NCBI GenBank assembly: GCA_002269645.1
Contig: NIVC01002502.1
Location: 62,001 to 126,000, forward strand
Length of the DNA stretch: 64,000 nt
Reading direction: 5' to 3'
Source: Macrostomum lignano
Taxonomy: Eukaryota
The position numbers were made by a program, and so were the translations under genes. The notes below the pieces were generated by a model. That model was not told the DNA's origin. It saw only the letters and a list, made by a program, of their open reading frames with translations, and ran no database searches. This document shows positions 24,957-62,169 of this stretch, one piece after another; position 1 is the stretch's first letter; the number at the start of each line of letters is the position of its first letter.

Positions 24957-27900
24957 TCACTCGAAACCGCTGCCGTTGCCATCTGGCTCGGAGCCGCCGC
25001 CCATGGACTGGTGCTGCTGCTGCTGCTGCTGCTGAAAGTCTGGTCGAATCGCCCAGTCAGGCGCGCCAGGCGGCACCAGTCTGGCGCTGCGGGCGCCCGC
25101 GTCGCGCCGACATTTTTCTAGCTGGGCGCGCTGCTTGACGGTGGCGAATCGCCGCAGGAACATCGAGTCCAGAGCGGATTTGATCTCTCTGACCCGGTCG
25201 GACTCCCACACTAGCTGGCGGACGCGCAAGTTCTCAGACTCGTCCTCCTCGTCCGACGATGTGAGATCCCGTGTGAGCACCAGGCGGTACTGCTCAAGAT
25301 CGTCCGGGGTCAGGGACGGCAGCAGCGACTCGAACGCTTTTTGCCTGCGGCTCAGTTTCTGGGCAGAATGTGTTGCACAGGATTGCAGACAGTTAGACAT
25401 GCCTGGCAGCTTAGGGATCGATATCCTCACTGTGGGAGCTTAGGGATCGATATCCTCACTGTGGGAGCTTAGGGATCGATATCCTCATTCTGGGAGCTTA
25501 GGAATCGATACCCTCACTGTGGGAGCTTAGGGATCGATATCCTCATTCTGGGAGCTTAGGGATCGATACCCTCACTGTGGGAGCTTAGGGATCGATATCC
25601 TCACTGTGGAAGCTTGGGGATCGATACCCTCACTGTGGGAGCTTAGGGATCGATACCCTCACTGTGGGAGCTTAGGGATCGATATCCTCACTGTGGAAGC
25701 TTAGGGATCGATATCCTCACTGTGGGAGCTTAGGGATCGATACCCTCACTGTGGGAGCTTAGGGATCGATATCCTCACTGTGGAAGCTTGGGGATCGATA
25801 CCCTCACTGTGGGAGCTTAGGGATCGATACCCTCACTGTGGGAGCTTAGGGATCGATATCCTCACTGTGGAAGCTTGGGGATCGATACCCTCACTGTGGG
25901 AGCTTAGGGATCGATACCCTCACTGTGGGAGCTTAGGGATCGATATCCTCACTGTGGAAGCTTAGGGATCGATATCCTCACTGTGGGAGCTTAGGGATCG
26001 ATATCCTCACTGTGGGAGCTTAGGGATCGATATCCTCACTGTGGGAGCTTAGGGATCGATATCCTCACTGTGGGAGCTTAGGGATCGATATCCTCACTGT
26101 GGGAGCTTAAGGATCGATATCCTCACTGTGGGAGCTTAGGGATCGATATCCTCACTGTGGGAGCTTAGGGATCAATATCCTGATCTAGGTGTATCCGGGC
26201 ACTAGCATCTTACGCTGTTCCTGCGCAGATATTTCCTGGAATCCTTGCGCCAATTTAACAAAGTTGTAAAAACGCATTTTCGAAGTTCGCCTTGAGGAGT
26301 TCATACGAAAAAATGAAAATGATGATTATAACTAGCTAAAAGCAATTACAATAGCTTAACTATTGAAGCATATTGCAGAGATTGAAGTATGCTATAGATT
26401 TAACACTGGGCAAACTCAATTAAAGTTCAACAGCACACGGATACCTGTTTGAGCTTGTTGCACCTAGCGGCAGACCTGCGCCTAATACCAATCCATTTAG
26501 TCTCGTTAATAAACTGGCTGCGACAAGCGCCTGAGTGACAGTTTATAGCAAATTATACAGTTATATAAGAGTTGTTTAATCGACATTTCAGCCTTGATGG
26601 CCTGTGGCTCCACCGAACGAGTGAAGGCTGCCTGGGTTCACTTTGATACAGTGAACTAATACGTTTTCAGTATACTAATCTACATTTAATTTTCGATTAA
26701 AGACTTACTGAAGCAACTGCAACACCTTCTCTTGGTCCTCTGGTAAGCCTTCAACCTTCCCCAGTCCTATGGTGGGCTTCCAGTTCCAAGGTCCTATGGT
26801 GGGCTTCCAGTTCCAAGGTCCTATGGTGGGCTTCCGGTTTCAAGGTCCTTTGCTGGGCTTCCAGTTCCAAGGTCCTCTGCTGGGCTTCCAGTTCCAAGGT
26901 CCTATAGTGAGCTTCCAGTTCCAAGGTCCTATGGTGCGCTTCCAGTTCCAAGGTCCTATGGTGGGCTTCCAGTTCCAAGGTCCTATGGTGGGCTTCCGGT
27001 TTCAAGGTCCTTTGCTGGGCTTCCAGTTCCAAGGTCCTCTGCTGGGCTTCCAGTTCCAAGGTCCTATAGTGAGCTTCCAGTTCCAAGGTCCTATGGTGGG
27101 CTTCCAGTTCCAAGGTCCTCTAGTGGGCTTCCAGTTCCAAGGTCCTATGGTGGGCTTCCAGTTCCAAGGTCCTCTGCTGGGCTTCCAGTTCCAAGGTCCT
27201 ATAGTGAGCTTCCAGTTCCAAGGTCCTATGGTGGGCTTCCAGTTCCAAGGTCCTATAGTGAGCTTCCAGTTCCAAGGTCCTATGGTGGGCTTCCTGTTCC
27301 AAGGTCCTCTAGTGGGCTTCCAGTTCCAAGGTCCTATGGTGGGCTTCCAGTTCCAAGGTCCTCTGCTGGGCTTCCAGTTCCAAGGTCCTATAGTGAGCTT
27401 CCAGTTCCAAGGTCCTATGGTGGGCTTCCAGTTCCAAGGTCCTCTAGTGGGCTTCCAGTTCCAAGGTCCTCTGCTGGGCTTCCAGTTCCAAGGTCCTCTA
27501 GTGGGCTTCCAGTTCCAAGGTCCTATGGTGGGCTTCCAGTTCCAAGGTCCTCTAGTGGGCTTCCAGTTCCAAGGTCCTATGGTGGGCTTCCAGTTCCAAG
27601 GTCCTCTAGTGGGCTTCCAGTTCCAAGGTCCTATGGTGGGCTTCCAGTTCCAAGGTCCTCTAGTGGGCTTCCAGTTCCAAGGTCCTATGGTGGGCTTCCA
27701 GTTCCAAGGTTCTCTAGTGGGCTTCCAGTTCCAAGGTCCTATGGTGGGCTTCCAGTTCCAAGGTCCTCTAGTGGGCTTCCAGTTCCAAGGTCCTATGGTG
27801 GGCTTCCAGTTCCAAGGTCCTCTGCTGGGCTTCCAGTTCCAAGGTCCTATAGTGAGCTTCCAGTTCCAAGGTCCTATGGTGGGCTTCCAGTTCCAAGGTC

Positions 27901-30183
27901 CTCTGCTGGGCTTCCAGTTCCAAGGTCCTATAGTGGGCTTCCAGTTCCAAGGTCATATGCTGGGCTTCCAGTTCCAAGGTCCTATAGTGGGCTTCCAGTT
28001 CCAAGGTCATATGCTGGGCTTCCAGTTCCAAGGTCCTATGGTGGGCTTCCAGTTCCAAGGTCCTATGGTGGGCTTCCAGTTCCAAGGTCCTATGGTGGGC
28101 TTCCAGTTCCAAGGTCCTATAGTGGGCTTCCAGTTCCAAGGTCCTATGGTGGGCTTCCAGTTCCAAGGTCCTATAGTGGGCTTCCAGTTCCAAGGTCATA
28201 TGCTGGGCTTCCAGTTCCAAGGTCCTATAGTGGGCTTCCAGTTCCAAGGTCATATGCTGGGCTTCCAGTTCCAAGGTCCATTGGTAGGCTACTAGGGTCC
28301 TATGGTGGGCAGTCAATACTAATCCCTTCCCTGTCCAAGGTGGGCCTTAAACACAAAGCAGCGCTCATCCAACACTTGTAAAGATATTGAACTCGTTGAT
28401 AGAAGTCACTGAAGCAATGAGCAGCATTATAATAAAAACGATGTAGCACGTACCCCATTTCTTCGCTTATATTTTCGACTGTTGTTGACCCAGGAGGCCA
28501 GCAGCTTTTTAGTAGAGTAATACAAATTTGAGGCCATCACTACAGCGAGTCGTGCATTGGCAAAGTCGCATCAATTTGAGACACTTATTATTATGAATAT
28601 AAAATGAATCGCTAGCGAGTTGTGAAGATCTACTACTCATTGGCACGAGTGTACGACAATTAGTACACAAAATTGCATAATTTAATTAGTTAATTAATTC
28701 ATATATAGCTTTAGCAATTTACAAAGTAAATTGAAATGCTCAGTTATTTTAACATTATTAGCAGACTTCAAACTCGAGCAGGAGCTAATTTTTTTATTAT
28801 AAAATTATTAAAACTCACGCATTTTATTCAGATTCCTACTGTCAGTAGGAGTAAAATAATATTAATAGCAATAGTTTGTATGATAAAAAACTATGACGCA
28901 ACAATTATAAATTTTTTCTACTTTAAGTAGGGAAAACGACTTTAAATCTGTTTTTATTTCCGAAATAAAAATATGACGTAACAATAGAATATTTGAAAAT
29001 CTGACCTTTCCACGTGTCGGGCTCAGCAACAATACCGGACGCCAATTGAGCTTGCTCGATAACCGTCTGGGCTACAGCTTGATTGACCGTGTGCTCCCAG
29101 CTGTTTAATAGTACATTTAGGGAGTCATTAGAGCGCGAACTAATCACTAAACTAAATAATAATGCAAGTCTTTTATCGAACTTACGGTTTGGAGAAATCA
29201 AACAGATGAGGCCCGCTACCGCGCAGATTCTTGTAAGTGTCTTTAAGAAGGTTCTAAAAATTTATTTGTTAAAAATCATATCTTAGATTAACTAAATTGC
29301 ATGTTACTTTAAGTAGCTCACTCCTCGATTTTTACTAAAAAAACTAAACTCTTATTTTTATCTTACTAAAAACGACATTTTCTATCATACTACTTAAGTA
29401 AGGATAGCTCAGCGTCTCCATGGATTTTTTTGGCTAAATTTGCAAGAAAAATACATAAATTAAAGAAAATAAATAAATCAAGTAGGAAAACTTCGCAGTC
29501 CTCACCCGAACATCGGCGCCACCGCCGGAGACTGCGGCGGCAGCGGCCGCAGCAGCTGCAGCGGACAGCTGATCGTCGCATTCAATCAGGGATGACCGGC
29601 CAGCGTGTTGATGCTGTTGGCCTCGCTGCCTGGTGCGCTGCTGAAACTGCCGACTACTGCTGCCGCCGCTCTCCTCCCCCATAATCATGACGCAATCGTC
29701 CGCTCCATCGTCAAATGTCTCGTCGACAAAATCGCCAACGCTACCGGTGGCACCACCTATGGCGAATTTTTCTTCATCAACCAGCAGGGAGGAGGCGGAG
29801 GCTGGGGCCTGACTGGATTCGCTCGGCTCGGCTTTGAAGCTGTTGCTGGCGCAGTGCCGCTTGCTAGGCGGAGGTTTGGCCGCCGTTTCCATGGCAACAG
29901 CGGCTGAAGCGGCCCGATCGTGTAGCAACGTTAGTTGACGATTGGCTTCGTCGAGCTGATGACGCAGCTGGCAGGCTGACGGGTGCATGACGTCAACCAG
30001 CTGGTGCTGCAGATTCTGTACCAGACGCATTGCGGACACCAGGTCTTCTAGGGGCATGCTCTCCAGCAGCATGCCCGCGTTGAGCAGGGTGGACTCGAAC
30101 AGGGTCAGGGCTGAGAAGCCCACGCCGCCCGACGCGGCCGACTGGTTTAGCATTGCAGAAGGCGATTGAACTGCTGCGGCCAT
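24957..30183 (-). CDS. Paralogue A: uncharacterised C14orf93-like family protein (~442 aa with variable exon A1 or A2)
   Basis: Exons 30183-29506 (phase 0), 29253-29186 (NLLKDTYKNLRGSGPHLFDFSKP, phase 2), 29100-29006 (WEHTVNQAVAQTVIEQAQ..DTWK, phase 1), one of A1/A2/A3, then 25358-24957 (KLSRRQKAF..DLTSSDEED..VRQLVWESDRVREIKSALD..SARLVPPGAPDWA). All GT..AG; homologous to B and C exon by exon. The C14orf93 likeness of the SSDEE/WES/LD/S.R..P...P.W region is recalled knowledge. Confidence 0.82.
25408..26180. repeat. 29-bp minisatellite GCTTAGGGATCGATATCCTCACTGTGGGA in the last intron of paralogue A
   Basis: Direct inspection; each unit contains TTAGGG and ATCGAT. Confidence 0.96.
26214..26290 (-). 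CDS. Paralogue A candidate variable exon A3 (77 nt): (G)ELRKCVFTTLLNWRKDSRKYLRRNS
   Basis: Acceptor ctcctcaag|, donor |gtaaga, phase 1 to 0. Clearly similar to A1 (LLxxW..[DN]SRKY.RRN). Confidence 0.72.
26445..26530 (-). CDS. Paralogue A candidate variable exon A2 (86 nt): (G)ACRSQFINETKWIGIRRRSAARCNKLKQ
   Basis: Acceptor tcactcag|, donor CAG|gtatcc, phase 1 to 0, same length as A1, basic. Sequence similarity to A1/A3 is weak. Confidence 0.55.
26765..28280. repeat. 27-bp minisatellite (GGTGGGCTTCCAGTTCCAAGGTCCTAT)n between exons A1 and A2
   Basis: About 56 units; in-frame 9-codon unit gives the 508-aa MVGFQFQGP ORF. Confidence 0.97.
28454..28539 (-). CDS. Paralogue A candidate variable exon A1 (86 nt): (V)MASNLYYSTKKLLASWVNNSRKYKRRNG
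   Basis: Acceptor gctgtag|, donor |gtacgt, phase 1 to 0, open frame. Confidence 0.7.
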
Positions 30184-30297
30184 GCTGGCTGTGAGACACT
30201 GCTCGGCTGTGGGGCGAACGGGGCCAGTGACAAGTGATGGATGGACATATATGGCCATAGTTGACAGCTATGGACAGCTGAATTAGATTTGCTGTAA

Positions 30298-30416
30298 AGA
30301 CAGACAGACAGACACTAAGACGGACAGACAGACAGACACAAACAGACACTAGATAGAGACAGACAGACAGACAGACAGACACAAGGCAGACAGACAGACA
30401 GACGATAGACAGACAC

Positions 30417-30463
<47 letters not shown>

Positions 30464-30588
30464 TACAGACATACAAGACATACAGACAGACAGACAGACA
30501 TACAGACAGACATACAGACAGGCAGGCAGACAGACAGACAGACAGACACAAGGCAGACAGACAGACAGACACACAGACAGACAGACAC

Positions 30589-30623
<35 letters not shown>

Positions 30624-30630
30624 CACACAC

Positions 30631-30661
<31 letters not shown>
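30298..30661. repeat. Imperfect (CAGA)n upstream of the paralogue A start codon
   Basis: Direct inspection. Confidence 0.93.
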
Positions 30662-31765
30662 GTTTAGCCTACGTTAGTACAACAATCTCTTAAAAACATC
30701 AAACAAATAGAAACCCTGCTCAGAAAAATAACAGTTAAAAGTGCCATCACTGAACTTGGCAACAGAAACGGAGAGTTACGAATGTGACTGGGTGTATTTG
30801 TCATTCTGTTTGTGAAATGTCAAATTGACAATGCAAGTATTGTTGACAAGATAAACGATGAAAATGCAAACAGTAATTGAATTGAACATTCAAATTAGTC
30901 ATACTTACAAACAAAAGCCAAGAAATTCTGCCAAATACAGGTTAGGCAGAGGTACACAAGGTGATCAAAATGAACAGCTTAAATGTTTAACCTGCTACTT
31001 TGGTCAGTAAAGTAGGTAGGTTATATCTTAGATGTTTATTTACGAGTAGGATGCATTGTGTTAACTGTTTAGCATAAGAATGATTACAAGTAAAATCCAG
31101 TTCTGAATTAACGAAATAACACATGCTGAGTTTAGATGAACCGGATTGAAGATCATTGTCGAGTTCAAAGTGCGGAACAGCTGATGTCGGTATTCTGATG
31201 GGGAGGTGGGACAATGCATAAAAATTGTGCAAATAAAAAAATTAAAAGCATTGCTGGCTACTAATAATAGAAAACACTAGAGATTATAATATTATTAGAC
31301 TAGCCTGTATCGAAGGCTACTTTAAGTAGGAAGTAAGCATTCAATTTATTATTTTTCAAATTAAATGTTTAAATTAAAATACGGATGTGCCCCTTTGCAA
31401 TCATCATCACTGACTACTTGCAAAAATTAAAAAAGGTTTTACGTAACATATCGGCATATCTTCAACTTATCTAAATCCGTAATAAATTATTTTCGATGTG
31501 TTATTATTGTTCCTCATTGTACAGCTTCGATAACCTTATTATTGCGTAAATTTATCTACGCAACATATCGGTAGTTATCTTCAACTTTTGCACATCTATA
31601 GTAATGGAGCTGCAATAATTTTATTCAATATTAATTTAATTCATCATTGCTACAACGATCTTTTAGTTTAGGAAGCTCCTCATTGTACAATTTCGATGAC
31701 CACACTTATAAAGTTATTTACGCAACATATCGGCAGGCTCAATAATCTAATTAAAGAGTTCAAAG

Positions 31766-34700
31766 CTACTGCCCGTCCCCGCTATAGTCCTGCTGGGCTC
31801 CCGCAGGCGCCCAGGCCGGGTCCCGGGCCCACGGCGCGCAGTCTGGCGGCGGCGGCCGCTCGGACTGGCAGGCGAGATTTCGCTGAAGCCGCTGCAGCTC
31901 GGCGCGCTGCTTCTCGTCGGCCAGCTGTTCGACAAACACGCCGTCAAGATGCTGCTTGACGCTGCGCAATTCGGCGCTCTCCCAGGCCAAGCAGCGAACT
32001 CGGGCGGTCTCAGCTGAGTCCAAGTCCGCCCCGGTCTCCTCATCCGAGCTGGTGTAGTCTCTGGTTAGCACGCTCTGGTAGCGCTGCCGAGACTGCTCAT
32101 CCAGGCTGTCCTTGATTGCCTCGTAGCTTTTCTGGCGACGGTTCAGCTTCTGCGTGGGTGGGGGAGTTGGGACAGGCGGGCGGGTGAGAATGGGGGCTGG
32201 CCTGAATGTGTGAGAATGAAGGCCAGAAGGTGTGTGAGTATGAAGGCCTGAAGGTGTGTGAGAATGAAGGCCTGAAGGTGTGTGAGTATGAAGGCCTGAA
32301 GGTGTGTGAGAATGAAGGCATGAAGGTGAGAATGAAGGCCTGGTGTGTGAGAATGAAAGCCTGAAGGTGTGAGGATAAAGGCCTGGTGTGTGATAATGAA
32401 AGCCTGAAGGTGTCAGAATAAAGGCTCGAAGGTGAGAATGAAGAACTGAAGGTGTGAGGATAAAAGCCTGGTGTGAGAATGAAGGCCTGAAGGTGTGAGA
32501 ATGAAGGCCTGAAGGTGAGATGAAGGCCTGAAGGTGAGAATGAAGGCCTGAAGGTGAGAATAAAGGCCTGAAGGTGAGAATGAAGAACTGAAGGTGTGAG
32601 GATAAAGACCTGGTGTGTGAGAATAAAGGCCTGGTGTGTGAGAACGAAGGCCTGAAGGTGTGAGGATGAAGGTTTGAATGTGTGTGAGAATGAAGGCCTG
32701 AAGGTGTGAGAACAAAGGCCTGAAGGTATGAGAAAAAAGTCCTGAAGTTGTGAGGATGAAGGCCTGAAGGTGCAAGGATGAAGGCCTGAAGGTGAAGCGC
32801 CCCAAGCTAACTCACAATTTGTACTTTTAATAACGAATTAAACTTGGACTGCCTAGCTTTGGCAAGAAAATCACGCCTATAACGCTGCGTGTACCAACTG
32901 CGCAGGTATTTCATAGACACTGCTGTAAAAATATTGTCAGGCATCATGGTATGGATAATTTGAAGGAATAGAAATATCAATTGAAAGGTTTCAAACCGGT
33001 TGCCGAATCATCGCAATTAATTGTGGAGCCTTATTAACTATTCATATTTCTGAATTGAATGGTATCAAACGATCCGTACGAGTACACATCGAGTGCATAT
33101 TCAAGCCAGGAGTGACTTATTTACCTTGAGGCTAGTAGGAGCTGGTCGGAATAGTGTACATTGAGGCTAGTGGGGGCTGGCCGGAATAGAGTGTATGTAC
33201 ATTGAGGCTAGGTGGGCTGGTCGGAAAGAAGTGTACATTGAGGCTAGGGGGGGGGGGCTGGCCGGAAAGAAGTGTACATTGAGGCTAGGGGGCTGGCCGG
33301 AATAGAGTGTACATTGAGGCTAGGGGAGCTGGTCGGAATAGTGTACATTGAGGCTAGTAGGAGCTGGTCGGAATAGTGTACATTGAGGCTAGGGGAGCTG
33401 GTCGGAATAGTGTACATTGAGGCTAGGGGAGCTGGTCGGAATAGTGTACATTGAGGCTAGTAGGAGCTGGTCGGAATAGTGTACATTGAGGCTAGTAGGA
33501 GCTGATCGGAATACTGTACATTGAGGCTAGGGGAGCTGGTCGTAATAGTGTACATTGAGGCTAGTAGGAGCTGATCGGAATACTGTACATTGAGACTAGT
33601 AGGAGCTGATCGGAATAGTGTACATTGAGGCTAGGGGAGCTGGTCGGAATAGTGTACATGGAGGCTAGTAGGAGCTGATCGGAATAGTGTACATTGAGGC
33701 TAGGGGAGCTGGTCGGAATAGTGTACATTGAGGCTAGGGGAGCTGGTCGGAATAGTGTACATTGAGGCTAGGGGAGCTGGTCGGAATAGTGTACATTGAG
33801 GCTAGGGGAGCTGGTCGGAATAGTGTACATTGAGGCTAGGGGAGCTGATCGGAATACTGTACATTGAGGCTAGGGGAGCTGGTCGGAATAGTGTACATTG
33901 AGGCTAGTAGGAGCTGATCGGAATAGTGTACATTGAGGCTAGTAGGAGCTGATCGGAATAGTGCACATTGAGGCTAGGGGAGCTGGTCGGAATAGTGTAC
34001 ATTGAGGCTAGGTGGGCTGGCCGGAAAGAAGTGTACATTGAGGCTAGGGGGGGGCGGGGCTGGCCGGAATAGAGTGTACATTGAGGCTAGGTGGGCTGGT
34101 CGGAAAGAAGTGTACATTGAGGCTAGGGGGGCTGGTCGGAAAGAAGTGTACATTGATGCTGGGGGGGGGGCTGGCCGGAATAGAGTGTACATTGAGGCTA
34201 AAATGAGGGACAAACATGAATTTAGAAGACCCCCAGAGACTCACAGTCTGCACGAAGATTAACGAATTGAGCTTAGACTGCCTAGCCTTGGCATTATAGT
34301 CGCGTCTAAGATTTTGACTGTACCAATTTCGCAAATATTTTTGCGAAACAGCTGAAACATGTATAAATATTGGAAATTGCACTAGAAAGTTCAGTTGCTT
34401 TAAGAAATAATCAACCTATACTACTTATTAGAAAGGTATATAAAGGACCCATCGCAAAAATGGAACAATACAACAAACTAGTCACGTAGAGCATTAATGC
34501 AAAAAATGTCTTGCAGCCTATAAATAAAAATGGTAATAAAAATTCATTTGCGTAAAAGCGTGCATTTTGGATGGGGATTAGGGATGGTTGCTTATGTTTG
34601 TGAACTGATGTACACATTGCGGGGGATGAGATCTGGGGGTGGTCGTTTATGATTCTTGGGCTGATGTACATCGCGGGGGACGAGATCTGGGGTGGTCTGC

Positions 34701-38339: not shown

Positions 38340-38497
38340 TCTGTCTGTCTGTCTGCCTGTCTGTCTGCCTGCCAGCCTGCCTGCCAGCCTGTCTGCCTGC
38401 CAGCCTGCCTGCCTGCCTGCCTGTCTGTCTGCCTGCGTGTCTGTCTGCCTGCCTGCCTGCCAGCCAGCCAGCCTGCCTGTCTGTCTGTCTGCCTGCG

Positions 38498-38542
<45 letters not shown>

Positions 38543-38561
38543 TTCTGTCTGTCTGCCTGCG

Positions 38562-38610
<49 letters not shown>

Positions 38611-38825
38611 GCCTGCGTGTCTGTCTGTCTGTCTGTCTGTCTGTCTTTCTGTCTGTCTGCCTGCGTGTCTGTCTGTCTGTCCGCCAGTCTGTCTGTCTGT
38701 CTGTCTGTCCGCCAGTCTGTCTGTCTGTCTGTCTGTCTGTCCGCCAGTCTGTCTGTCTGTCTGTCTGTCTGTCCGCCAGTCTGTCTGTCTGTCTGTCTGT
38801 CCGTGTGTCTGTCTGCCCGTCTGCC
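38340..38825. repeat. Compound (TCTG)/(CCTG)n microsatellite upstream of paralogue B
   Basis: Direct inspection. Confidence 0.95.
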
Positions 38826-39424
38826 TTTCAATCAGAAATATGTTTAGAAAAACCTGAAGCGAATGATAAAAGATTAAAAGCAGAAGCCAATGTGAATTGT
38901 AAATCATGAACAAGTCAGACTGTGGACAAATTTAATCGGGCAGTCAAGGACTCAAGTGAGTAATGGTGCAAGGCATGGAAGTTGCAGGCCTATGTACAGT
39001 AAATGTGCAAGCACATTTGGACAGGCTATTATATAAGACTGGCTTGGTTTAATAGAAAAGAATTCACTCAAGCAATTAACAATTAACAATTATATTGAAT
39101 TTATATATAAGCGTAAAAGATAGGGCATACAGGAAGGGCCATCAGATAAGCACAATATGACGTCACAGCAATAAGTGTATATAAAAAGCTAATGGTTGCA
39201 AAGTGAACTTCATTGTCATGCAAGTATAGATCAGCCTTACCTGCACGTTTAAAGGCATAATGAATTTCTGGCTTAGATATAATAATAGTAGAATATAAAA
39301 CGAATACAAACCTATCGATTACTACGATTTTTATTAGAAATTAACTATACAAAAGTAACGTGATGAAAAATTAATGACAGAATACACAGAAGCTCATTAG
39401 AAACCAGAAAACAGTACCCCACAC

Positions 39425-40015: not shown

Positions 40016-40295
40016 GTGGGTCAGATTAGGTACCTAAGCCAAATTACCACAAAAGTGCAAACTAATGAAAGTGCAAACAGTAGTAAGGCGCAGACACAAT
40101 CATAGTTTCCGGAAATTATGAAAACTGATTTTTAATTAAAACGAGCCAATAAGAAATCGCTGTAAAAATTAAAACTGTATGCAGCAGTAAAAGTACATAC
40201 CTGACAGCATTGGACATAGTGAACAAAGTACATTTTTACAGTATTGAAACGTTTCCCGGGAATACAGAAACTAAAAGGAACTTTCTGTGTAAGCT

Positions 40296-53000: not shown

Positions 53001-56000
53001 GACTGCTGACAAACTGGCTGCTGACAAACTGACTGCTGACAAACTGGCTGCTGACAAACTGACTGCTGACAAACTGACTGCTGACAAACTGACTGCTGAT
53101 AAACTGACTGCTGACAAACTGGCTGCTGACAAACTGACTGCTGACAAACTGACTGCTGACAAACTGGCTGCTGACAAACTGACTGCTGACAAACTGACTG
53201 CTGACAAACTGACTGCTGACAAACTGACAAACTGACTGCTGATAAACTGACTGCTGATAAACTGACTGCTGACTGCTGATAAACTGACTGCTGACAAACT
53301 GACTGCTGACAAACTGACTGCTGACAAACTGACAAACTGACTGCTGACTGCTGACAAACTGACTGCTGACTGCTGATAAACTGACTGCTGACTGCTGATA
53401 AACTGACTGCTGACAAACTGACTGCTGACAAACTGACAAACTGACTGCTGATAAACTGACTGCTGACAAACTGACTGCTGACAAACTGACTGCTGACTGC
53501 TGATAAACTGACTGCTGACTGCTGACAAACTGACTGCTGACAAACTGACTGCTGATAAACTGACTGCTGACAAACTGACAAACTGACTGCTGATAAACTG
53601 ACTGCTGACAAACTGACTGCTGACAAACTGACTGCTGACAAACTGACTGCTGACAAACTGACTGCTGATAAACTGGCTGCTGACAAACTGACTGCTGACA
53701 AACTGACTGCTGACTGCTGACAAACTGACTGCTGACAAACTGACTGCTGACAAACTGACTGCTGACAAACTGACTGCTGATAAACTGGCTGCTGATAAAC
53801 TGACTGCTGACTGCTGACAAACTGACTGCTGACAAACTGACTGCTGACTGCTGACAAACTGACTGCTGACAAACTGACTGCTGACTGCTGACAAACTGAC
53901 TGCTGACAAACTGACTGCTGATAAACTGACTGCTGACAAACTGGCTGCTGACAAACTGACTGCTGACAAACTGACTGCTGATAAACTGACTGCTGATAAA
54001 CTGACTGCTGATAAACTGACTGCAGACAAACTGACTGCTGATAAACTGACTGCTGACAAACTGGCTGCTGACAAACTGACTGCTGACAAACTGACTGCTG
54101 ATAAACTGACTGCAGACAAACTGACTGCTGACAAACTGGCTGCTGACAAACTGACTGCTGACAAACTGGCTGCTGACAAACTGACTGCTGACAAACTGAC
54201 TGCTGACAAACTGACTGCTGACAAACTGACTGCTGATAAACTGACTGCTGACAAACTGACTGCTGACAAACTGGCTGCTGACAAACTGACTGCTGACAAA
54301 CTGACTGCTGACAAACTGACTGCTGACAAACTGACTGCTGACAAACTGACTGCTGACAAACTGACTGCTGACAAACTGACTGCTGACAAACTGACTGCTG
54401 ACAAACTGACTGCTGACAAACTGACTGCTGATAAACTGACTGCTGACAAACTGACTGCTGACAAACTGACTGCTGATAAACTGGCTGCTGACAAACTGAC
54501 TGCTGACAAACTGACTGCTGACAAACTGACTGCTGACAAACTGACTGCTGACAAACTGACTGCTGACAAACTGACTGCTGATAAACTGACTGCTGACAAA
54601 CTGGCTGCTGATAAACTGACTGCTGACAAACTGGCTGCTGACAAACTGACTGCTGACAAACTGACTGCTGACAAACTGACTGCTGATAAACTGACTGCTG
54701 ACAAACTGGCTGCTGACAAACTGACTGCTGACAAACTGGCTGCTGACAAACTGACTGCTGACAAACTGACTGCTGACAAACTGACTGCTGACAAACTGAC
54801 TGCTGATAAACTGACTGCTGACAAACTGGCTGCTGACAAACTGACTGCTGACAAACTGACTGCTGACAAACTGGCTGCTGACAAACTGACTGCTGACAAA
54901 CTGACTGCTGACAAACTGACTGCTGACAAACTGACAAACTGACTGCTGATAAACTGACTGCTGACAAACTGACTGCTGACAAACTGACTGCTGACTGCTG
55001 ATAAACTGACTGCTGACTGCTGACAAACTGACTGCTGACAAACTGACTGCTGACAAACTGACAAACTGACTGCTGATAAACTGACTGCTGACAAACTGAC
55101 TGCTGACAAACTGACAAACTGACTGCTGATAAACTGACTGCTGACAAACTGACTGCTGACAAACTGACAAACTGACTGCTGACAAACTGACAAACTGACT
55201 GCTGACAAACTGACTGCTGACAAACTGACTGCTGACAAACTGACTGCTGACTGCTGACAAACTGGCTGCTGATAAACTGACCTACTGATAAACTGACTGC
55301 TGATAAACTGACTGCTGACAAACTGACTGCTGATAAACTGACTGCTGACAAACTGACTGCTGACAAACTGACTGCTGACAAACTGACTGCTGACAAACTG
55401 ACAAACTGACTGCTGACAAACTGACTGCTGACAAACTGACTGCTGATAAACTGACTGCTGACAAACTGACAAACTGACTGCTGACAAACTGACTGCTGAC
55501 AAACTGACTGCTGATAAACTGACTGCTGACAAACTGACTGCTGACAAACTGACTGCTGACTGCTGACAAACTGGCTGCTGACAAACTGACTGCTGACAAA
55601 CTGGCTGCTGACAAACTGACTGCTGACAAACTGACTGCTGACAAACTGACTGCTGACTGCTGACAAACTGGCTGCTGACAAACTGACTGCTGACAAACTG
55701 ACTGCTGATAAACTGACTGCTGACAAACTGACAAACTGACTGCTGACAAACTGGCTGCTGATAAACTGACTGCTGACAAACTGACTGCTGACAAACTGAC
55801 TGCTGACAAACTGACTGCTGACTGCTGACAAACTGGCTGCTGATAAACTGACTGCTGATAAACTGACTGCTGACAAACTGACAAACTGACTGCTGACAAA
55901 CTGACTGCTGATAAACTGACTGCTGACAAACTGACTGCTGACAAACTGACTGCTGACAAACTGACTGCTGATAAACTGACTGCTGACAAACTGACTGCTG

Positions 56001-59000
56001 ATAAACTGACTGCTGATAAACTGACTGCTGACAAACTGGCTGCTGACAAACTGGCTGCTGACAAACTGACTGCTGATAAACTGACTGCTGACAAACTGAC
56101 TGCTGACAAACTGACTGCTGATAAACTGACTGCTGACAAACTGGCTGCTGACAAACTGACTGCTGACAAACTGACTGCTGACAAACTGACTGCTGACAAA
56201 CTGACTGCTGATAAACTGACTGCTGATAAACTGACTGCAGACAAACTGACTGCTGATAAACTGACTGCTGACAAACTGGCTGCTGACAAACTGACTGCTG
56301 ACAAACTGACTGCTGATAAACTGACTGCAGACAAACTGACTGCTGACAAACTGGCTGCTGACAAACTGACTGCTGACAAACTGACTGCTGACAAACTGAC
56401 TGCTGATAAACTGACTGCTGACAAACTGACTGCTGATAAACTGACTGCTGATAAACTGACTGCTGACAAACTGACTGCTGACAAACTGACTGCTGACAAA
56501 CTGACTGCTGACAAACTGACTGCTGACTGCTGACAAACTGACTACTGACAAACTGACTGCTGATAAACTGGCTGCTGACAAACTGACTGCTGACAAACTG
56601 ACTGCTGACAAACTGACTGCTGACAAACTGACTGCTGACAAACTGGCTGCTGACAAACTGACTGCTGACAAACTGACTGCTGACAAACTGACTGCTGACT
56701 GCTGACAAACTGGCTGCTGACAAACTGACTGCTGACAAACTGACTGCTGATAAACTGACTGCTGACAAACTGACAAACTGACTGCTGACAAACTGGCTGC
56801 TGATAAACTGACTGCTGACAAACTGACTGCTGACAAACTGACTGCTGACAAACTGACTGCTGACTGCTGACAAACTGGCTGCTGATAAACACACTGCTGA
56901 TAAACTGACTGCTGACAAACTGACAAACTGACTGCTGACAAACTGACTGCTGACAAACTGACTGCTGATAAACTGACTGCTGACAAACTGACTGCTGATA
57001 AACTGACTGCTGACAAACTGACTGCTGACAAACTGACTGCTGACAAACTGACTGCTGACAAACTGACTGCTGATAAACTGACTGCTGATAAACTGACTGC
57101 TGACAAACTGACTGCTGATAAACTGGCTGCTGACAAACTGACTGCTGATAAACTGACTGCTGACAAACTGACTGCTGACAAACTGACTGCTGACAAACTG
57201 ACTGCTGATAAACTGGCTGCTGACAAACTGACTGCTGACAAACTGACTGCTGACAAACTGACTGCTGACAAACTGACTGCTGACAAACTGACTGCTGACA
57301 AACTGACTGCTGATAAACTGGCTGCTGACAAACTGACTGCTGACAAACTGACTGCTGACAAACTGACAAACTGACTGCTGACAAACTGACTGCTGATAAA
57401 CTGACTGCTGACAAACTGGCTGCTGACTGCTGACAAACTGACTGCTGACAAACTGACAAACTGACTGCTGATAAACTGACTGCTGACAAACTGACAAACT
57501 GACTGCTGATAAACTGATTGCTGACAAACTGACAAACTGACTGCTGACAAACTGACTGCTGACTGCTGATAAACTGACTGCTGATAAACTGACTGCTGAC
57601 AAACTGACAAACTGACTGCTGACAAACTGACTGCTGACAAACTGACAAACTGACTGCTGACAAACTGACTGCTGACAAACTGACTACTGATAAACTGACT
57701 GCTGACAAACTGACTGCTGATAAACTGACTGCTGACAAACTGACTGCTGACAAACTGACAAACTGACTGCTGACAAACTGACTACTGACAAACTGACTGC
57801 TGACAAACTGACAAACTGACTGCTGATAAACTGACTGCTGACAAACTGACAAACTGACTGCTGACAAACTGACTACTGACAAACTGACTGCTGACAAACT
57901 GACTGCTGACAAACTGACAAACTGACTGCTGACAAACTGACTACTGACAAACTGACTGCTGACAAACTGACTGCTGACAAACTGACAAACTGACTGCTGA
58001 TAAACTGACTGCTGACAAACTGACAAACTGACTGCTGACAAACTGACTGCTGACAAACTGACAAACTGACTGCTGACAAACTGACAAACTGACTGCTGAC
58101 AAACTGACTACTGACAAACCGACTGCTGACAAACTGACTGCTGACAAACTGACTGCTGATAAACTGACTGCTGACAAACTGACTGCTGATAAACTGACTG
58201 CTGATAAACTGACTGCTGACAAACTGACTGCTGACAAACTGACTGCTGACAAACTGACTGCTGACAAACTGACTGCTGACTGCTGACAAACTGACTACTG
58301 ACAAACTGACTGCTGATAAACTGGCTGCTGACAAACTGACTGCTGACAAACTGACTGCTGACAAACTGACTGCTGACAAACTGACTGCTGACAAACTGGC
58401 TGCTGACAAACTGACTGCTGACAAACTGACTGCTGACAAACTGACTGCTGACTGCTGACAAACTGGCTGCTGACAAACTGACTGCTGACAAACTGACTGC
58501 TGATAAACTGACTGCTGACAAACTGACAAACTGACTGCTGACAAACTGGCTGCTGATAAACTGACTGCTGACAAACTGACTGCTGACAAACTGACTGCTG
58601 ACAAACTGACTGCTGACTGCTGACAAACTGGCTGCTGATAAACTGACTGCTGATAAACTGACTGCTGACAAACTGACAAACTGACTGCTGACAAACTGAC
58701 TGCTGACAAACTGACTGCTGATAAACTGACTGCTGACAAACTGACTGCTGACAAACTGACTGCTGACAAACTGACTGCTGACAAACTGACTGCTGATAAA
58801 CTGACTGCTGATAAACTGACTGCTGACAAACTGACTGCTGATAAACTGGCTGCTGACAAACTGACTGCTGATAAACTGACTGCTGACAAACTGACTGCTG
58901 ACAAACTGACTGCTGACAAACTGACTGCTGATAAACTGGCTGCTGACAAACTGACTGCTGACAAACTGACTGCTGACAAACTGACTGCTGACAAACTGAC

Positions 59001-62000
59001 TGCTGACAAACTGACTGCTGACAAACTGACTGCTGATAAACTGGCTGCTGACAAACTGACTGCTGACAAACTGACTGCTGACAAACTGACAAACTGACTG
59101 CTGACAAACTGACTGCTGATAAACTGACTGCTGACAAACTGGCTGCTGACTGCTGACAAACTGACTGCTGACAAACTGACAAACTGACTGCTGATAAACT
59201 GACTGCTGACAAACTGACAAACTGACTGCTGATAAACTGATTGCTGACAAACTGACAAACTGACTGCTGACAAACTGACTGCTGACTGCTGATAAACTGA
59301 CTGCTGACAAACTGACAAACTGACTGCTGACAAACTGACTGCTGACAAACTGACAAACTGACTGCTGACAAACTGACTGCTGACAAACTGACTACTGATA
59401 AACTGACTGCTGACAAACTGACTGCTGATAAACTGACTGCTGACAAACTGACTGCTGACAAACTGACAAACTGACTGCTGACAAACTGACTACTGACAAA
59501 CTGACTGCTGACAAACTGACAAACTGACTGCTGATAAACTGACTGCTGACAAACTGACAAACTGACTGCTGACAAACTGACTACTGACAAACTGACTGCT
59601 GACAAACTGACTGCTGACAAACTGACAAACTGACTGCTGACAAACTGACTGCTGACAAACTGACTGCTGACAAACTGACTGCTGACAAACTGACAAACTG
59701 ACTGCTGATAAACTGACTGCTGACAAACTGACAAACTGACTGCTGACAAACTGACTGCTGACAAACTGACTGCTGACAAACTGACAAACTGACTGCTGAC
59801 AAACTGACAAACTGACTGCTGACAAACTGACTACTGACAAACCGACTGCTGACAAACTGACTACTACAGGTAACTAATCTTAACCAACACAACTCACCTT
59901 GTCCATAGACATCTGAACACGACAAGCAGATTTGCAGTGAGTCGGTTTTAAAGTTTTCCGATACCACTGCTCCAGGTAGCGCGTGAACAGGTCTGCAACC
60001 ATTATTGTGAGATGATGCAAGCTCTCGTAAGAAGCCCAGGTGAGAAACAGCCTAAGCTAAAGACATGAGTGTACTCACTCTTCCAAGACTTCACATCGGG
60101 CGTCGGCTTAGCACTCATAGCCACTGCGCGATTGATAATAATCTCAGCTGCTGCTCGGTTACCAGGGGCAGAGTACCTGATGTAGGGCGATGGTCAACTG
60201 CTGCTTAGCTTGAGCAATAGGCTGCCTGACACACTCAATCTCTTTCTGACACACTCAATCTCTTTCTGACACACTCAATCTCTTTCTGACACACTCAATC
60301 TCTTCCTGACACACTCAATCTCTTCCTGACACACTCAATCTCTTCCTGACACACTCAATCTCTTTCTGACACACTCAATCTCTTTCTGACACACTCAATC
60401 TCTTCCTGACACACTCAATCTCTTCCTGACACACTCAATCTCTTCCTGACACACTCAATCTCTTTCTGACACACTCAATCTCTTTCTGACACACTCAATC
60501 TCTTCCTGACACACTCAATCTCTTCCTGACACACTTGATCTCTTCCTGACACACTCAATCTCTTCCTGACACACTCAATCTCTTCCTGACACACTTGATC
60601 TCTTCTTGACACACTTGATCTCTTCCTGGCACACTTGATCTCTTCCTGGCACACTTGATCTCTTCCTGACACACTTGATCTCTTCCTGACACACTCAATC
60701 TCTTCCTGACACTCAATCTCTTCCTGACACACTCAATCTCTTTCTGACACACTTGATCTCTTCCTGACACACTCAATCTCTTCCTGACACACTCAATCTC
60801 TTCCTGACACACTCAATCTCTTCCTGACACACTCAATCTCTTCCTGACACACTCAATCTCTTCCTGGCACACTTGATCTCTTCCTGACACACTCAATCTC
60901 TTCATGACACACTCAATCTCTTCATGACACACTCAATCTCTTCCTGACACAATTGATCTCTCCCTGACACAATTGATCTCACCCTGACACAATTGATCTC
61001 TTCTTGACACACTTTTTCTCAATTCTCAATTCTCAATTCTCAATTCTCATTTCTCAATTCTCAATTAACACACTTGGAACTCAATCGCTCCCAGATCCAC
61101 ATCCATGGATACTGACTCCAATCCACAGCTACTGACCCCAATCCACAGCCACTGACCCCAATCCACAGCCACTGACCCCAATCCACAGCCACTGACCCCA
61201 ATCCACAGCCACTGACCCTAATCCACAGCCACTGACCCCAATCCACAGCCACTGACCACAATCAACAGCCACTGACCCCAATCCACAGCCACTGACCACA
61301 ATCAACAGCCACTGACCCCAATCCACAGCCACTGACCACAATCAACAGCCACTGACCCCAATCCACAGCCACTGACCCCAATCCACAGCCACTGACCGCA
61401 ATCCACAGCTACTGACCCCACCCAAACCGTGACTCACGACTTGGTAAAGTCGAAGAGCTCCTGGCCCTCAGACTGCAGCAGTCTGTAAGCCCGCCTCAGC
61501 AGCTGTTTCCAGCTGTCCGACAGGCTTTTGGTTGCGCTGTCCCTGACAGAAGAGCTGCTAGGGGTAGCCGCAGCCGCGGCCGCAGCAGTCGAAGCCAAAG
61601 CGCTGCTAACCGCAGCGGAATACCGACGCCTAGACAAGCGCGAGCCGCTTACTATGAGTAGCAGAACTAGGAGTAACTTTCGAATTGGAGCCAGCAGAGG
61701 GTGATTTTAATTTAGCCGCAGCGGGCGTCAACGAGGCTGGTTTAGCGGCCCTGCCAACTGCCTGCGAATTGTTGGTCGATGTTGACGAGCGCCGACCGTT
61801 TCTCTTCAGAGAAACGCAACTGCCGCCGCCGCTCTTTGGTGTTGCCGACATTGATTTGACCTCGACGCTGGCATCGGATTGCTGCTTATTGCTGTACAAT
61901 TCAGCTAAGCGGATTATCCTACTAGCCGAAGGCTCCACGCATTCAACTAATCTGCCGTGCAGTTGAGAAACTATTCTCAATGCCAGAACCAAGTCGGCCA

Positions 62001-62169
62001 GCTCCATCGACTCAAGCAGCATTTGAGCATTGTGTATGGTGCATTCGAATAGCGCTATGGACGAGAATGGCTGGCCGTCGGTTGCCGACGCCCCCGCCGC
62101 AGCGATTGCCGCAGTTCCAGGCAAATCCGGCAGAGAAGGAATGGGTGACTCGCACAATAGGGTGGCCAT
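41003..62169 (-). CDS. Paralogue C: uncharacterised C14orf93-like family protein; one frame disruption in exon 1; 18.4-kb last intron
   Basis: Exons 62169-61438 (FSSIALFECTIHNAQMLLESMELADLVLALRIV.. then, in another frame, SWKQLLRRAYRLLQSEGQELFDFTKS; donor TC|gtgagt, phase 2), 60176-60079 (YSAPGNRAAAEIIINRAV..KSWK, phase 1), 59992-59898 ((N)LFTRYLEQWYRKTLKPTHCKSACRVQMSMDK, phase 0), 41512-41003 (KLSQRRRSL..DMVSSDEEE..VKLLPWETLESARLKSILD..SSRRAPVDAPDWA). GT..AG junctions; phases match paralogue A. Confidence 0.78.
41548..59866. repeat. 18.3-kb 15-mer satellite (AAACTGACTGCTGAC)n with variant units and multi-kb internal duplications
   Basis: About 1,200 units with variants GATAAA, CTGGCT, CTACTG and 7-nt/8-nt short units. 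All SAVSL/SSQFV/QQSVC ORFs are artefacts of this repeat. Confidence 0.99.
60226..61012. repeat. 20-bp (CTGACACACTCAATCTCTTC)n minisatellite in paralogue C intron 1
   Basis: Direct inspection; followed by (AATTCTC)n at about 61020-61065. Confidence 0.95.
61120..61420. repeat. 20-bp (CCACAGCCACTGACCCCAAT)n minisatellite in paralogue C intron 1
   Basis: Direct inspection. Confidence 0.95.

Follow-up and report, generated by a model that had tools for sequence, protein, structure and literature searches.

Tandem paralogues carrying arrays of homologous internal exons in Macrostomum lignano, and their relation to human C14orf93

Mutually exclusive exon clusters generated by tandem exon duplication are found in insect Dscam1 (exons 4, 6 and 9), Mhc and 14-3-3zeta, and in the exon pairs of vertebrate ion channels. 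The three Macrostomum lignano genes described here resemble such clusters: homologous exons of the same phase and similar length (hereafter, cassettes) lie between constant exons, the residues that determine the fold are kept while the remainder varies, and cassette length is not a multiple of three, meaning that none or two would break the frame. There are also differences: (i), exclusivity at the Macrostomum locus is a prediction from exon structure; (ii), the competing RNA structures of the Dscam1/14-3-3zeta subtype were not found at this locus by a crude duplex test; (iii), Dscam1-type clusters reside in a receptor, a motor or a channel, whereas the Macrostomum host is an uncharacterised, probably nuclear protein; (iv), the size of the array differs among tandem paralogues (1, 3 and 6).

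In lola and mod(mdg4), a BTB domain is joined to alternative 3'-terminal exons encoding zinc-finger or FLYWCH domains, partly by trans-splicing. The original prediction for this DNA drew an analogy with these loci, which holds loosely. Both combine a constant N-terminal part, possibly involved in self-association, with alternative exons, and many isoforms per locus are predicted in Macrostomum as well. In contrast to lola and mod(mdg4), what varies is an internal cassette of ~35 residues within a single domain, the last exon does not vary, and Pfam gives no BTB, zinc-finger or FLYWCH match in the window exons.

The third comparison is with C14orf93/RTFC, a human protein that is conserved and associated with disease but has neither an assigned molecular function nor a recognised domain (PMC5322522, PMC10163356). 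RTFC has been reported mainly from the nucleus and membrane (PMC5322522); mouse P19 (4931414P19Rik) localises to the nucleus and carries a predicted bipartite nuclear localisation signal, and it has also been reported to be secreted, with a signal peptide (PMC10163356). We propose, with a probability of about 0.7, that the Macrostomum locus consists of tandem paralogues with a duplicated exon 4, each mRNA taking one cassette. The earlier interpretation of the locus is supported: of the two outcomes named in advance as refuting it, absence of profile similarity to C14orf93-like proteins and absence of the modelled transcripts, neither was obtained.

Gene layout and exon structure

The window is a 64-kb stretch of Macrostomum lignano DNA, and all coordinates are window positions. 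Three paralogues lie head-to-tail on the minus strand, C (62169-41003), B (38187-31766) and A (30183-24957); gene C opens with its ATG at 62169 and the stop codon of gene A has its final base at 24957, so that both predicted ends were exact. Common to all three, and present at the predicted places on the minus strand, are an N-terminal helical block, a second block ("block 2") and a last exon whose product begins KL[SN].R. When the paralogues are compared by tblastn, E ranges from 1e-7 to 7e-16 in the N-terminal block and from 1e-14 to 3e-24 in the last exon. The motifs foreseen for the last exon are likewise present: it starts KLSRRQ in A (25358), KLNRRQ in B (32149) and KLSQRR in C (41512), immediately 3' of a pyrimidine tract and CAG, and contains SSDEE, W-E-[ST], LD and P.WA in 3/3 genes. 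Block 2 is undivided in B; in A and C, a phase-2 intron interrupts it after FDF[ST]K. It is followed, before the last exon is reached, by homologous cassettes: six in B, three in A and one in C, the same numbers as predicted. The exons are as follows (a slash marks a splice junction; HMM values refer to the cassette profile described in the next section).

Gene B
37933-38187, minus strand: exon 1, with ATG, N-terminal helical block FSPLTMFECT...EVLDP at 38112-37975 and donor CTTG/gtaaga
36561-37083, minus strand: exon 2, with low-complexity linker, acidic-hydrophobic motif DSDDDCVLMETD (36936-36901) and block 2 EWKSVLRRAYRVLKDETGSNVFDF...QAWR; ends in phase 1 at TGGCGCA/gtgaga and lacks the introns of A and C
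36025-36134, minus strand: cassette 1, 110 nt, N-SALKNYLRVYYKSTLKPTYKRFEDAARMAGIMTLSV, acceptor ...ggcag/AC, donor gtaagg, HMM E 6.8e-6; one synonymous difference from the sister copy; nearest to cassettes 1-2 of the P0002 locus
35365-35471, minus strand: cassette 2, 107 nt, T-MIGRYFKAYYYSVLKRDHNIKSVKNGNTKIIKQLL, HMM E 0.012; identical in the sister copy; nearest to cassette 3 of the P0002 locus
35024-35121, minus strand: cassette 3, 98 nt, T-SCHRYLKPHYSKNLRYPYQRRLRPNFSISATL, HMM E 0.0018; one synonymous difference from the sister copy; nearest to the cassette used in P0004
34757-34863, minus strand: cassette 4, 107 nt, T-SSFKYLRIWYTQFLKRSFKAKTDKCKISSLISLQT, HMM E 2.9e-5; identical in the sister copy
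34245-34351, minus strand: cassette 5, 107 nt, T-VSQKYLRNWYSQNLRRDYNAKARQSKLNSLIFVQT, HMM E 1e-9; used in database model P0181
32816-32922, minus strand: cassette 6, 107 nt, T-VSMKYLRSWYTQRYRRDFLAKARQSKFNSLLKVQI, HMM E 1e-4
31766-32149, minus strand: last exon, KLNRRQK...TSSDEE...LAWES...LD...SERPPPPDCAPWA, stop

Gene A
29506-30183, minus strand: exon 1, with N-terminal block (30117-29980), linker, DDGADDCVMIMGEE (29712-29671) and donor CGG/gtgagg; compare P0014
29186-29253, minus strand: exon 2a, NLLKDTYKNLRGSGPHLFDFSK-P, phase-2 donor
29006-29100, minus strand: exon 2b, WEHTVNQAVAQTVIEQAQLASGIVAEPDTWK, phase-1 donor AAAG/gtcaga
28454-28539, minus strand: cassette 1, 86 nt, V-MASNLYYSTKKLLASWVNNSRKYKRRNG; used in GenBank models P0014 and P0179; identical in the sister copy
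26445-26530, minus strand: cassette 2, 86 nt, G-ACRSQFINETKWIGIRRRSAARCNKLKQ; differs from the sister copy at two synonymous sites; scores 61 (BLOSUM) with the cassette that paralogue P0019 uses
26214-26290, minus strand: cassette 3, 77 nt, G-ELRKCVFTTLLNWRKDSRKYLRRNS, donor gtaaga; identical in the sister copy
24957-25358, minus strand: last exon, KLSRRQK...TSSDEE...LVWES...LD...SARLVPPGAPDWA, stop

Gene C
61438-62169, minus strand: exon 1 and block 2a as a single exon, with N-terminal block (62067-61930), linker and SWKQLLRRAYRLLQSEGQELFDFTK-S
60079-60176, minus strand: exon 2b, YSAPGNRAAAEIIINRAVAMSAKPTPDVKSWK, phase-1 donor; matches P0032
59898-59992, minus strand: the single cassette, 95 nt, N-LFTRYLEQWYRKTLKPTHCKSACRVQMSMDK, HMM E 0.0024
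41513-59897, minus strand: last intron, 18.4 kb, removed by splicing in P0032
41003-41512, minus strand: last exon, KLSQRRR...VSSDEEE...LPWET...LD...SSRRAPVDAPDWA, acidic tail, stop

Two further candidates were rejected. An intron between exon 1 and block 2a of gene C is absent from the sister copy, relative to which there is merely a 1-nt frameshift here: one extra A near 61650 breaks the reading frame. The read-through past exon 2b of gene A (29005-28941) has a cassette-like look, yet it resembles no used cassette and has an indel and three mismatches in the sister copy; it is probably intronic.

Cassette conservation and use in transcripts

All ten cassettes combine an acceptor in phase 1 with a donor in phase 0 and are 3n+2 nt long; an mRNA with none of them, or with two, would therefore read the last exon in another frame. 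A cassette HMM, trained solely on other loci and run against a six-frame translation of the whole 64-kb window, gives exactly seven matches (E 1e-9 to 0.012; next best 1.8), namely the six B cassettes and the C cassette. An HMM built from A-type cassettes, which are too diverse, was not discriminating. The comparison of two genomic copies indicates that the cassettes are under purifying selection: divergence is ~8-fold lower in the cassettes than in their introns and leaves every amino acid unchanged. In B, there are two differences in 636 nt of cassette, none altering an amino acid, and 37 in 1605 nt of intervening intron (Fisher p 4.7e-4). The array is also ancient relative to the genes that carry it. 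The P0002 locus holds seven cassettes in an order collinear with B, the two genes being 52-57% identical, and cassettes are more similar between genes than within one gene; together, this cross-gene similarity and collinear order indicate that the array predates the duplication that separated B from the gene at the P0002 locus. Docking or selector RNA pairing was sought with a crude method that folded first or last introns against inter-cassette introns, by which intron duplex energies were not clearly above shuffled controls.

The GenBank BOX15 models are derived from RNA-seq, by an assembler that kept isoforms at a fraction of 0.75 or more (PMC5730564); we attribute the small number of annotated isoforms to this threshold. 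For each gene, one transcribed form is seen. Gene A with the cassette at 28539-28454 is reproduced by P0014 and P0179, and gene C by P0032, which spans the 18-kb intron, is 100% identical over block 2b, the cassette and the last exon, and reads SWK-N-LFTRY...SMDK-KLSQRRR. The sole RNA-derived model of gene B, P0001 (96% overall identity), skips every cassette and is frameshifted; it reads AWR-KAEPSPEKLRGNQGQPG followed by a stop, which is exactly the +1 frame of the last exon, terminated after 17 residues. Gene B with cassette 5 is seen in WormBase model P0181 (...QAWR-TVSQKY...FVQT-KLNRRQ), which is not RNA-derived. Database models thus cover one of the six B cassettes, one of three in A and the single one in C, and none shows two isoforms of one same gene for A, B or C. 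Among paralogues, the near-identical gene copies P0190 and P0191 take different cassettes, and so do the model pairs P0005/P0011 and P0003/P0010.

These models could also be taken to mean that each gene has a single functional cassette and that the rest are leftover pseudo-exons, the locus being simply three paralogous genes: GenBank gives one cassette for A, one for C and none for B, and the cassette-like read-through of gene A is clearly decaying. We consider this unlikely. All nine cassettes of B and A retain an open frame, a pyrimidine tract with AG acceptor and a GT donor in phase, and they diverge far less than the introns around them, by synonymous differences only; moreover, the cassette order has been kept between genes that are 52-57% identical, and RNA-derived models of paralogous copies contain different cassettes.

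Alternatively, the array might serve mainly for regulated unproductive splicing, with frameshifted mRNAs, or a truncated protein devoid of the C-terminal module, arising from skipping or double inclusion and tuning amount rather than diversity. The all-skipped P0001, ending in KAEPSPEKLRGNQGQPG and a stop, and the 3n+2 length of every cassette would be expected under such a mechanism, which nevertheless appears quite improbable to us given that dosage control needs no six diverged cassettes under protein-level purifying selection. In addition, the single exon 4 of Lingula and amphioxus (see below) is already 3n+2 nt long, which suggests that the frame rule was inherited and is not a new device. 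Under the preferred reading of one cassette per mRNA, each transcript would include exactly one, and inclusion of zero or two would shift the last exon out of frame, so that the protein is cut short or the mRNA is exposed to decay.

An ancestral exon 4 and a bilaterian gene family

The conserved introns place the cassette in an older gene structure. A, C, Lingula P0048 and amphioxus P0128 have introns after FDF.., after ..W.. and before KL.RR, in phases 2, 1 and 0, respectively; the FDF.. intron has been lost from gene B. The Lingula and amphioxus genes contain a single exon 4 of 110 nt, with intron positions and phases identical to those of the Macrostomum genes. Gene structure thus identifies the cassette with exon 4 of an ancestral bilaterian gene of five exons. 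That exon would have been ~110 nt long (3n+2), starting in phase 1 and ending in phase 0, and in Macrostomum its tandem duplication would have given three copies in A, six in B and seven at a sister locus, having occurred once or not at all in C.

The genome-wide count of family members that had been suggested along with the original prediction yields at least 20 divergent members in Macrostomum, and the family is multicopy in several invertebrates. A word-indexed protein search, an insensitive method, returned two proteins with a chimeric query (A, C and cassette) and eight with the bilaterian alignment. The UniRef names borne by members (PDZ, CUT, BEN, MADF-like, Rho-GAP and others) are artefacts, no such domain being present in the tested proteins. 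In amphioxus, one family member adjoins a Transposase_21 gene.

Multicopy families of this kind can raise the suspicion of a selfish or transposon-associated gene, whose tandem copies and exon repeats would be by-products of local repeat instability; the amphioxus neighbour and the minisatellite-packed window could be read in the same way. We find this explanation very hard to credit: three phyla share the intron positions and phases, a scan of 134 family proteins gave no mobile-element domain (transposase, integrase or other), the genes next to the locus, Bap31 and a SWIRM/Myb gene, are ordinary ones, and the cassettes are unique sequence lying between minisatellites and not within them.

Duplication of exon 4 in tandem paralogues, as we propose, would make the family a clear case outside arthropods and vertebrates in which gene duplication and tandem exon duplication occur together, with array sizes of 1, 3, 6 and 7 in close paralogues and a gene structure that is conserved between flatworm and amphioxus. 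As transgenesis is established in M. lignano, isoform use can be tested in this model animal.

Homology to C14orf93 and the predicted fold

The original prediction had noted a likeness between block 3, encoded by the last exon, and the C-terminus of C14orf93. The human sequence used here was checked only by its Pfam DUF4616 match (1014 bits, full length). A profile of 43 bilaterian modules is collinear with residues 320-485 of C14orf93 (hhalign probability 78%, E 1.9e-5, 162 columns; hmmsearch 24.5 bits, P 1.2e-9), and in a shuffle control the real C14orf93 segment scores 27.8 bits, the best of 500 composition-matched shuffles 6.2. Profile similarity is therefore significant; the likeness in block 3 stands, although it is wider than had been thought and takes in block 2 and the cassette as well. 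A profile without flatworm sequences scores 37.8 bits against C14orf93 (P 9e-14) and 67-127 bits against the flatworm modules, and a flatworm-only profile gives no significant match to C14orf93. DUF4616 itself (PF15394, gathering score 27 bits) has no match in the window exons (E<=1), among 124 homologues (E<=0.01) or among 10 members (E<=10). These profile comparisons argue that A, B and C represent the flatworm branch of a family of bilaterian genes, with C14orf93/RTFC as its member in vertebrates, thereby tying C14orf93 to a family outside Pfam coverage.

Residues ~302-485 of C14orf93 (~180 C-terminal residues) are collinear with flatworm block 2, cassette and last exon, and both share an invariant Asn and Tyr, an acidic cluster S-[SD]-[DE]-E-[DES], an L-D motif and S-x-R-x(1,2)-P. 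The two proteins otherwise differ: C14orf93 matches DUF4616, unlike the flatworm and other invertebrate members; its first ~300 residues, with a putative signal peptide, have no counterpart in the flatworm proteins, profile comparisons giving no alignment upstream of residue ~300; conversely, the flatworm N-terminal block has no counterpart in C14orf93.

AlphaFold predicts the C-terminal module of ~215 residues with confidence (pLDDT 92.6, pTM 0.78). The cassette had been described as a variable middle helix, and it is indeed helical in the AlphaFold models, but it forms the centre (residues ~66-101) of a longer helix of 56 residues (62-117) and not a helix of its own. Its first ~15 residues contain the core [KR]-Y-x3-aromatic-aromatic-x3-L-K-x2-aromatic, whose Tyr is invariant across phyla, and its last ~20 residues vary freely. 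Foldseek on AlphaFold models, a check named with the original prediction, found nothing below E=1.5 for the high-confidence module in PDB and BFVD or for the low-confidence full-length model in PDB, two databases that do not cover predicted structures of cellular proteins. A Zeste DNA-binding domain (Foldseek E 6, probability 0.12) was too weak and was discounted. PDB sequence searches with two profiles gave no match, and Pfam gave no family-specific match on the window exons, 124 homologues or fused database models. The family thus gains a confidently predicted domain of ~215 residues without a neighbour in PDB or BFVD, and the repeated duplication of one exon in one lineage marks the centre of the long helix as a part worth varying.

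What might this variation do? Isoforms would have in common the acidic-hydrophobic motif, the folded module and the N-terminal helical block, which is likely to mediate self-association, and would differ in one exposed stretch of the long helix. The matching basic stretch in the vertebrate relative, a protein seen in the nucleus, would be its predicted bipartite nuclear localisation signal. The cassette may thus set the partner, nucleic-acid or nuclear-targeting specificity of a nuclear protein. It is conceivable, and we put this forward tentatively, that this stretch is the specificity-determining surface of a C14orf93-type domain, from which Macrostomum built a combinatorial recognition system. 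If true, pairing via the N-terminal block would multiply the diversity offered by ten cassettes in a 37-kb cluster and by 20 or more paralogues in the genome, a logic comparable to that of Dscam or lola in a nuclear protein family, and the arrays of the flatworm would show directly where the functional surface of an orphan human protein lies.

As regards the surroundings, the neighbouring genes are Bap31 and a SWIRM/Myb gene, and minisatellites abound in the window, with the cassettes as unique sequence between them. The last intron of gene C consists almost entirely of a 15-bp minisatellite (41550-59862, about 1280 copies) and measures 18.4 kb here against 0.78 kb in the sister copy.

Three tandem paralogues with internal cassette exons

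Genes A, B and C are minus-strand paralogues that share an N-terminal helical block, a second block (block 2) and a last exon starting KL[SN].R:

62169-41003, minus strand: gene C, head-to-tail paralogue
38187-31766, minus strand: gene B, head-to-tail paralogue, the middle gene
30183-24957, minus strand: gene A, head-to-tail paralogue

When the paralogues are compared with one another (tblastn), the N-terminal blocks match at E 1e-7 to 7e-16 and the last exons at E 1e-14 to 3e-24; a motif search recovered every motif listed in the original prediction and found all of them confined to these three genes. Block 2 is unbroken in B, and in A and C a phase-2 intron interrupts it after FDF[ST]K. The last exons begin KLSRRQ (A), KLNRRQ (B) and KLSQRR (C), each immediately preceded by a pyrimidine tract and CAG. 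The spliced gene B model is 96% identical to the GenBank model BOX15_Mlig023559g2, every hit of that first search belonging to the flatworm Macrostomum lignano, and PAA57319.1 (P0032, assembly GCA_002269645.1) is encoded in the window at 100% identity. A sister copy of the cluster, about 94-99% identical, lies on NIVC01002989.1 (L004).

Between block 2 and the last exon lie short homologous exons, here called cassettes. In each of the genes, block 2 ends in a phase-1 donor (TGGCGCA|gtgaga, TGGAAAG|gtcaga, TGGAAGA|gtgagt), and each cassette is a short open segment with a pyrimidine-rich acceptor that gives two bases to the split codon and a GT donor placed at a codon boundary. Their lengths are 3n+2 without exception:

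Gene B, minus strand: six cassettes of 110, 107, 98, 107, 107 and 107 nt, read from the DNA
Gene A, minus strand: three cassettes of 86, 86 and 77 nt, read from the DNA
Gene C, minus strand: one cassette of 95 nt, read from the DNA

A cassette HMM trained solely on the cassettes of other loci, scanned against the six-frame translation of the whole window, matched all six B cassettes and the single one of C (E 1e-9 to 0.012), with nothing further below E 1.8. The A cassettes are a more diverse subtype whose own profile is non-discriminating; the A calls rest on other evidence.

The GenBank annotation of the assembly derives from RNA-seq and a de novo transcriptome, its assembler dropping isoforms with a fraction below 0.75 (PMC5730564). 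In these models, P0014 and P0179 represent gene A with the first cassette, their exon junctions falling exactly as modelled. P0032 represents gene C: it begins inside exon 2b and runs on to the cassette and then the last exon, meaning that an 18.4-kb intron is spliced out. P0001 is gene B with all cassettes skipped and the last exon following block 2 directly; it ends in KAEPSPEKLRGNQGQPG*, which is KLNRRQKSYEAIKDSLDE read in the +1 frame, matching the prediction from the 3n+2 lengths. P0181, a WormBase-derived model, is gene B with cassette 5, junction residue included. Alternative cassette use inside A, B or C is not seen directly among the database models. Among other family members, the near-identical gene copies P0190 and P0191 use different cassettes, and two pairs of models (P0005/P0011 and P0003/P0010) each represent one gene with different cassettes.

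Two partial RNA-derived models of a C-like paralogue on another contig, P0018 and P0183, start LIFVQT or LILVQI, which is how a B-type cassette typically ends (...SLIFVQT|gt); the 5'-leader of the C-like gene and its start Met follow. These models suggest read-through transcription, with a cassette donor from one family gene joined to exon 1 of the next one downstream.

Origin and maintenance of the cassettes

When a profile was run against 1.84 billion representative proteins, 600 matches were obtained at E<=0.001; those outside flatworms take in block 2, the cassette and the last exon. The named members belong to Lingula (brachiopod), Mizuhopecten and Potamilus (bivalve molluscs), Owenia (annelid), Patiria and Apostichopus (echinoderms), Glandiceps (hemichordate) and Branchiostoma (amphioxus), all annotated as uncharacterised. 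In both Lingula and amphioxus the gene is made up of five exons: the last three introns match those of A and C exactly in position and phase (2, 1, 0), exon 4, a single exon of 110 nt, lines up with the cassette, and the last exon begins KLSRRQ or KVERRG. Given the same intron positions and phases and the single aligned exon, the cassette is the ancestral exon 4, multiplied in Macrostomum, and its frame-breaking length is inherited from that exon. Intron loss differs among the tandem paralogues: gene B (36561-37083) has lost the phase-2 block 2 intron common to A, C, Lingula and amphioxus, and gene C the linker/block 2a intron present in A (60079-61542 compared with 29006-29253 in A). At the amphioxus locus (L003, 1-5203), a 990-residue Transposase_21 gene lies directly upstream of the family gene (P0128) on the opposite strand; the Lingula locus and the flatworm loci show no neighbour of this type.

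Compared with the sister copy, the six B cassettes carry 2 changes in 636 positions, both of them synonymous, and the intervening introns carry 37 in 1605 aligned positions as well as indels (Fisher p 4.7e-4). Cassettes 1, 2 and 3 of gene A show 0, 2 (synonymous) and 0 differences, and A cassette 2 is close to the cassette used in an annotated paralogue, P0019. One further candidate, a read-through segment behind A exon 2b that looks like a cassette, was rejected: over 65 nt it departs from the sister copy by an indel and three mismatches.

The array also recurs at the locus of P0002, a paralogue 52-57% identical to B, where the same layout with seven cassettes is followed by an A-like gene. 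The closest cassettes there are 1-2 for B cassette 1, 3 for B cassette 2, and 7 for B cassettes 4-6. Cross-gene scores between B and this locus exceed within-gene scores, so the array predates the duplication separating the two genes and has been maintained since then, with a few local duplications added later.

Predicted fold, C14orf93 and a candidate mechanism

The ~215-residue C-terminal module of B with cassette 5 was predicted with pLDDT 92.6 and pTM 0.78 from a 43-sequence bilaterian alignment, with helices at 7-24, 38-54, 62-117, 120-129, 161-178 and 181-188 and strands at 151-156 and 190-198. The cassette forms residues 66-101 of the 56-residue helix. A full-length P0002 model from a shallow alignment is poor (pLDDT 59), with the cassette still within a long helix. 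Foldseek returned no structural neighbour below E 1.5 in PDB or BFVD, and sequence profiles gave no PDB match. In 21 flatworm cassettes the pattern [KR]-Y-x3-aromatic-aromatic-x3-L-K-x2-aromatic is kept over the first ~15 residues, its Tyr being invariant across phyla, and the other ~20 residues are unconstrained. The linker carries a conserved acidic-hydrophobic motif, DSDDDCVLMETD in B (36901-36936) and DDGADDCVMIMGEE in A (29671-29712), which resembles, as a putative match, a SUMO-interaction motif; most flatworm members have a like motif, and comparable stretches lie towards the N-terminus in members from molluscs, brachiopods and echinoderms (DDVIVID, DSSDYVVVF, DIRVVD).

The human C14orf93 sequence used here has the known length of 538 residues and was validated only through DUF4616, the Pfam model for C14orf93. 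It scores 1014 bits across the whole of that model, confirming that it is a genuine member and that the model is present in the library, and no family member scanned matches that model. The bilaterian module profile nevertheless aligns with C14orf93 (hhalign probability 78%, E 1.9e-5) over 162 collinear columns at residues 320-485, and hmmsearch gives 24.5 bits (P 1.2e-9); none of 500 shuffles of the C14orf93 segment exceeds 6.2 bits, the unshuffled segment scoring 27.8. A profile without flatworm sequences scores 37.8 bits on C14orf93 (P 9e-14) and 67-127 bits on the flatworm modules, whereas a flatworm-only profile is not significant against C14orf93: the link is thus transitive, from flatworms through other invertebrates to vertebrate C14orf93. 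It is confined to the C-terminal ~180 residues of the human protein. The second nuclear localisation signal predicted for the vertebrate protein would, according to the alignment, fall in the basic stretch matching the cassette plus the first part of the last exon. RTFC, as vertebrate C14orf93 is also called, has an unknown molecular function and is possibly a transcriptional regulator (PMC5322522), and no recognisable domain was reported for the mouse protein P19 (PMC10163356).

One cassette per mRNA would be favoured, because none or two shift the frame. Isoforms of one gene would then have the N-terminal block, the acidic-hydrophobic motif and the fold in common and would differ in a ~20-residue stretch of the long helix. 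The matching stretch is strongly basic in other bilaterians and holds a predicted nuclear localisation signal in the vertebrate relative, which suggests that it is an interaction or targeting surface. With at least 20 divergent family members, Macrostomum seems to have diversified this stretch through both gene duplication and exon duplication. As in Dscam1, Mhc and 14-3-3zeta, the layout is that of a probable mutually exclusive exon cluster from tandem exon duplication. It is not the lola/mod(mdg4) layout, the analogy drawn originally: in A, B and C the variable exon is an internal one, the last exon does not vary, and neither a BTB nor a zinc-finger domain is present. The arrangement is already known in kind, and the host protein family is, as far as the searched literature shows, previously undescribed outside vertebrates.

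Gene C, minisatellites and neighbours

In exon 1 of gene C (61645-61656, minus strand) the window reads CATAGTAAGCGG where L004 has CATAGT-AGCGG, one extra A that shifts the frame to ...THSKRLALV*; in L004 the exon continues in frame into block 2a. The frameshift accounts for P0032 starting at an internal Met in exon 2b, and the extra A may be either a true mutation or an artefact of assembly.

The window is minisatellite-rich eukaryotic DNA. Within the cluster, most introns and most spacers between genes contain a minisatellite of their own (unit length 20-34 bp, 10-57 copies, 80-95% matches), with units unlike one another, and similar minisatellite content is seen elsewhere in the window (1-10 kb, 19-24 kb). 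Splicing removes the array in gene C's last intron from P0032; in the sister copy this intron measures only 0.78 kb.

41550-59862: minisatellite in the last intron of gene C, 18.3 kb, ~1280 copies of the 15-bp unit CTGACAAACTGACTG
24000-24701, 25404-26181, 26764-28290, 32199-32794, 33122-34200, 37173-37876: minisatellites
39424-40023, 40301-40747, 60225-61013, 61111-61420, 62361-62911, 63266-63498: minisatellites
30298-30662, 38340-38823: (AGAC)n/(TCTG)n tracts just upstream of A and B
16935-17663, plus strand: Bap31/Bap29 gene, intronless 242-residue ORF, Pfam E 1.7e-32 (transmembrane region)

The UniRef names of P0006, P0010-P0013 and P0180-P0199 conflict with one another (Exo70, Ras-GEF, DUF4211, PDZ, CUT, and also BEN, MADF-like, Rho-GAP and others); since none of six UniRef-named M. 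lignano members tested shows any Pfam domain, these names are unfit for use and the identities were rejected. The Bap31/Bap29 ORF is an unrelated neighbour on the strand opposite to A, B and C.
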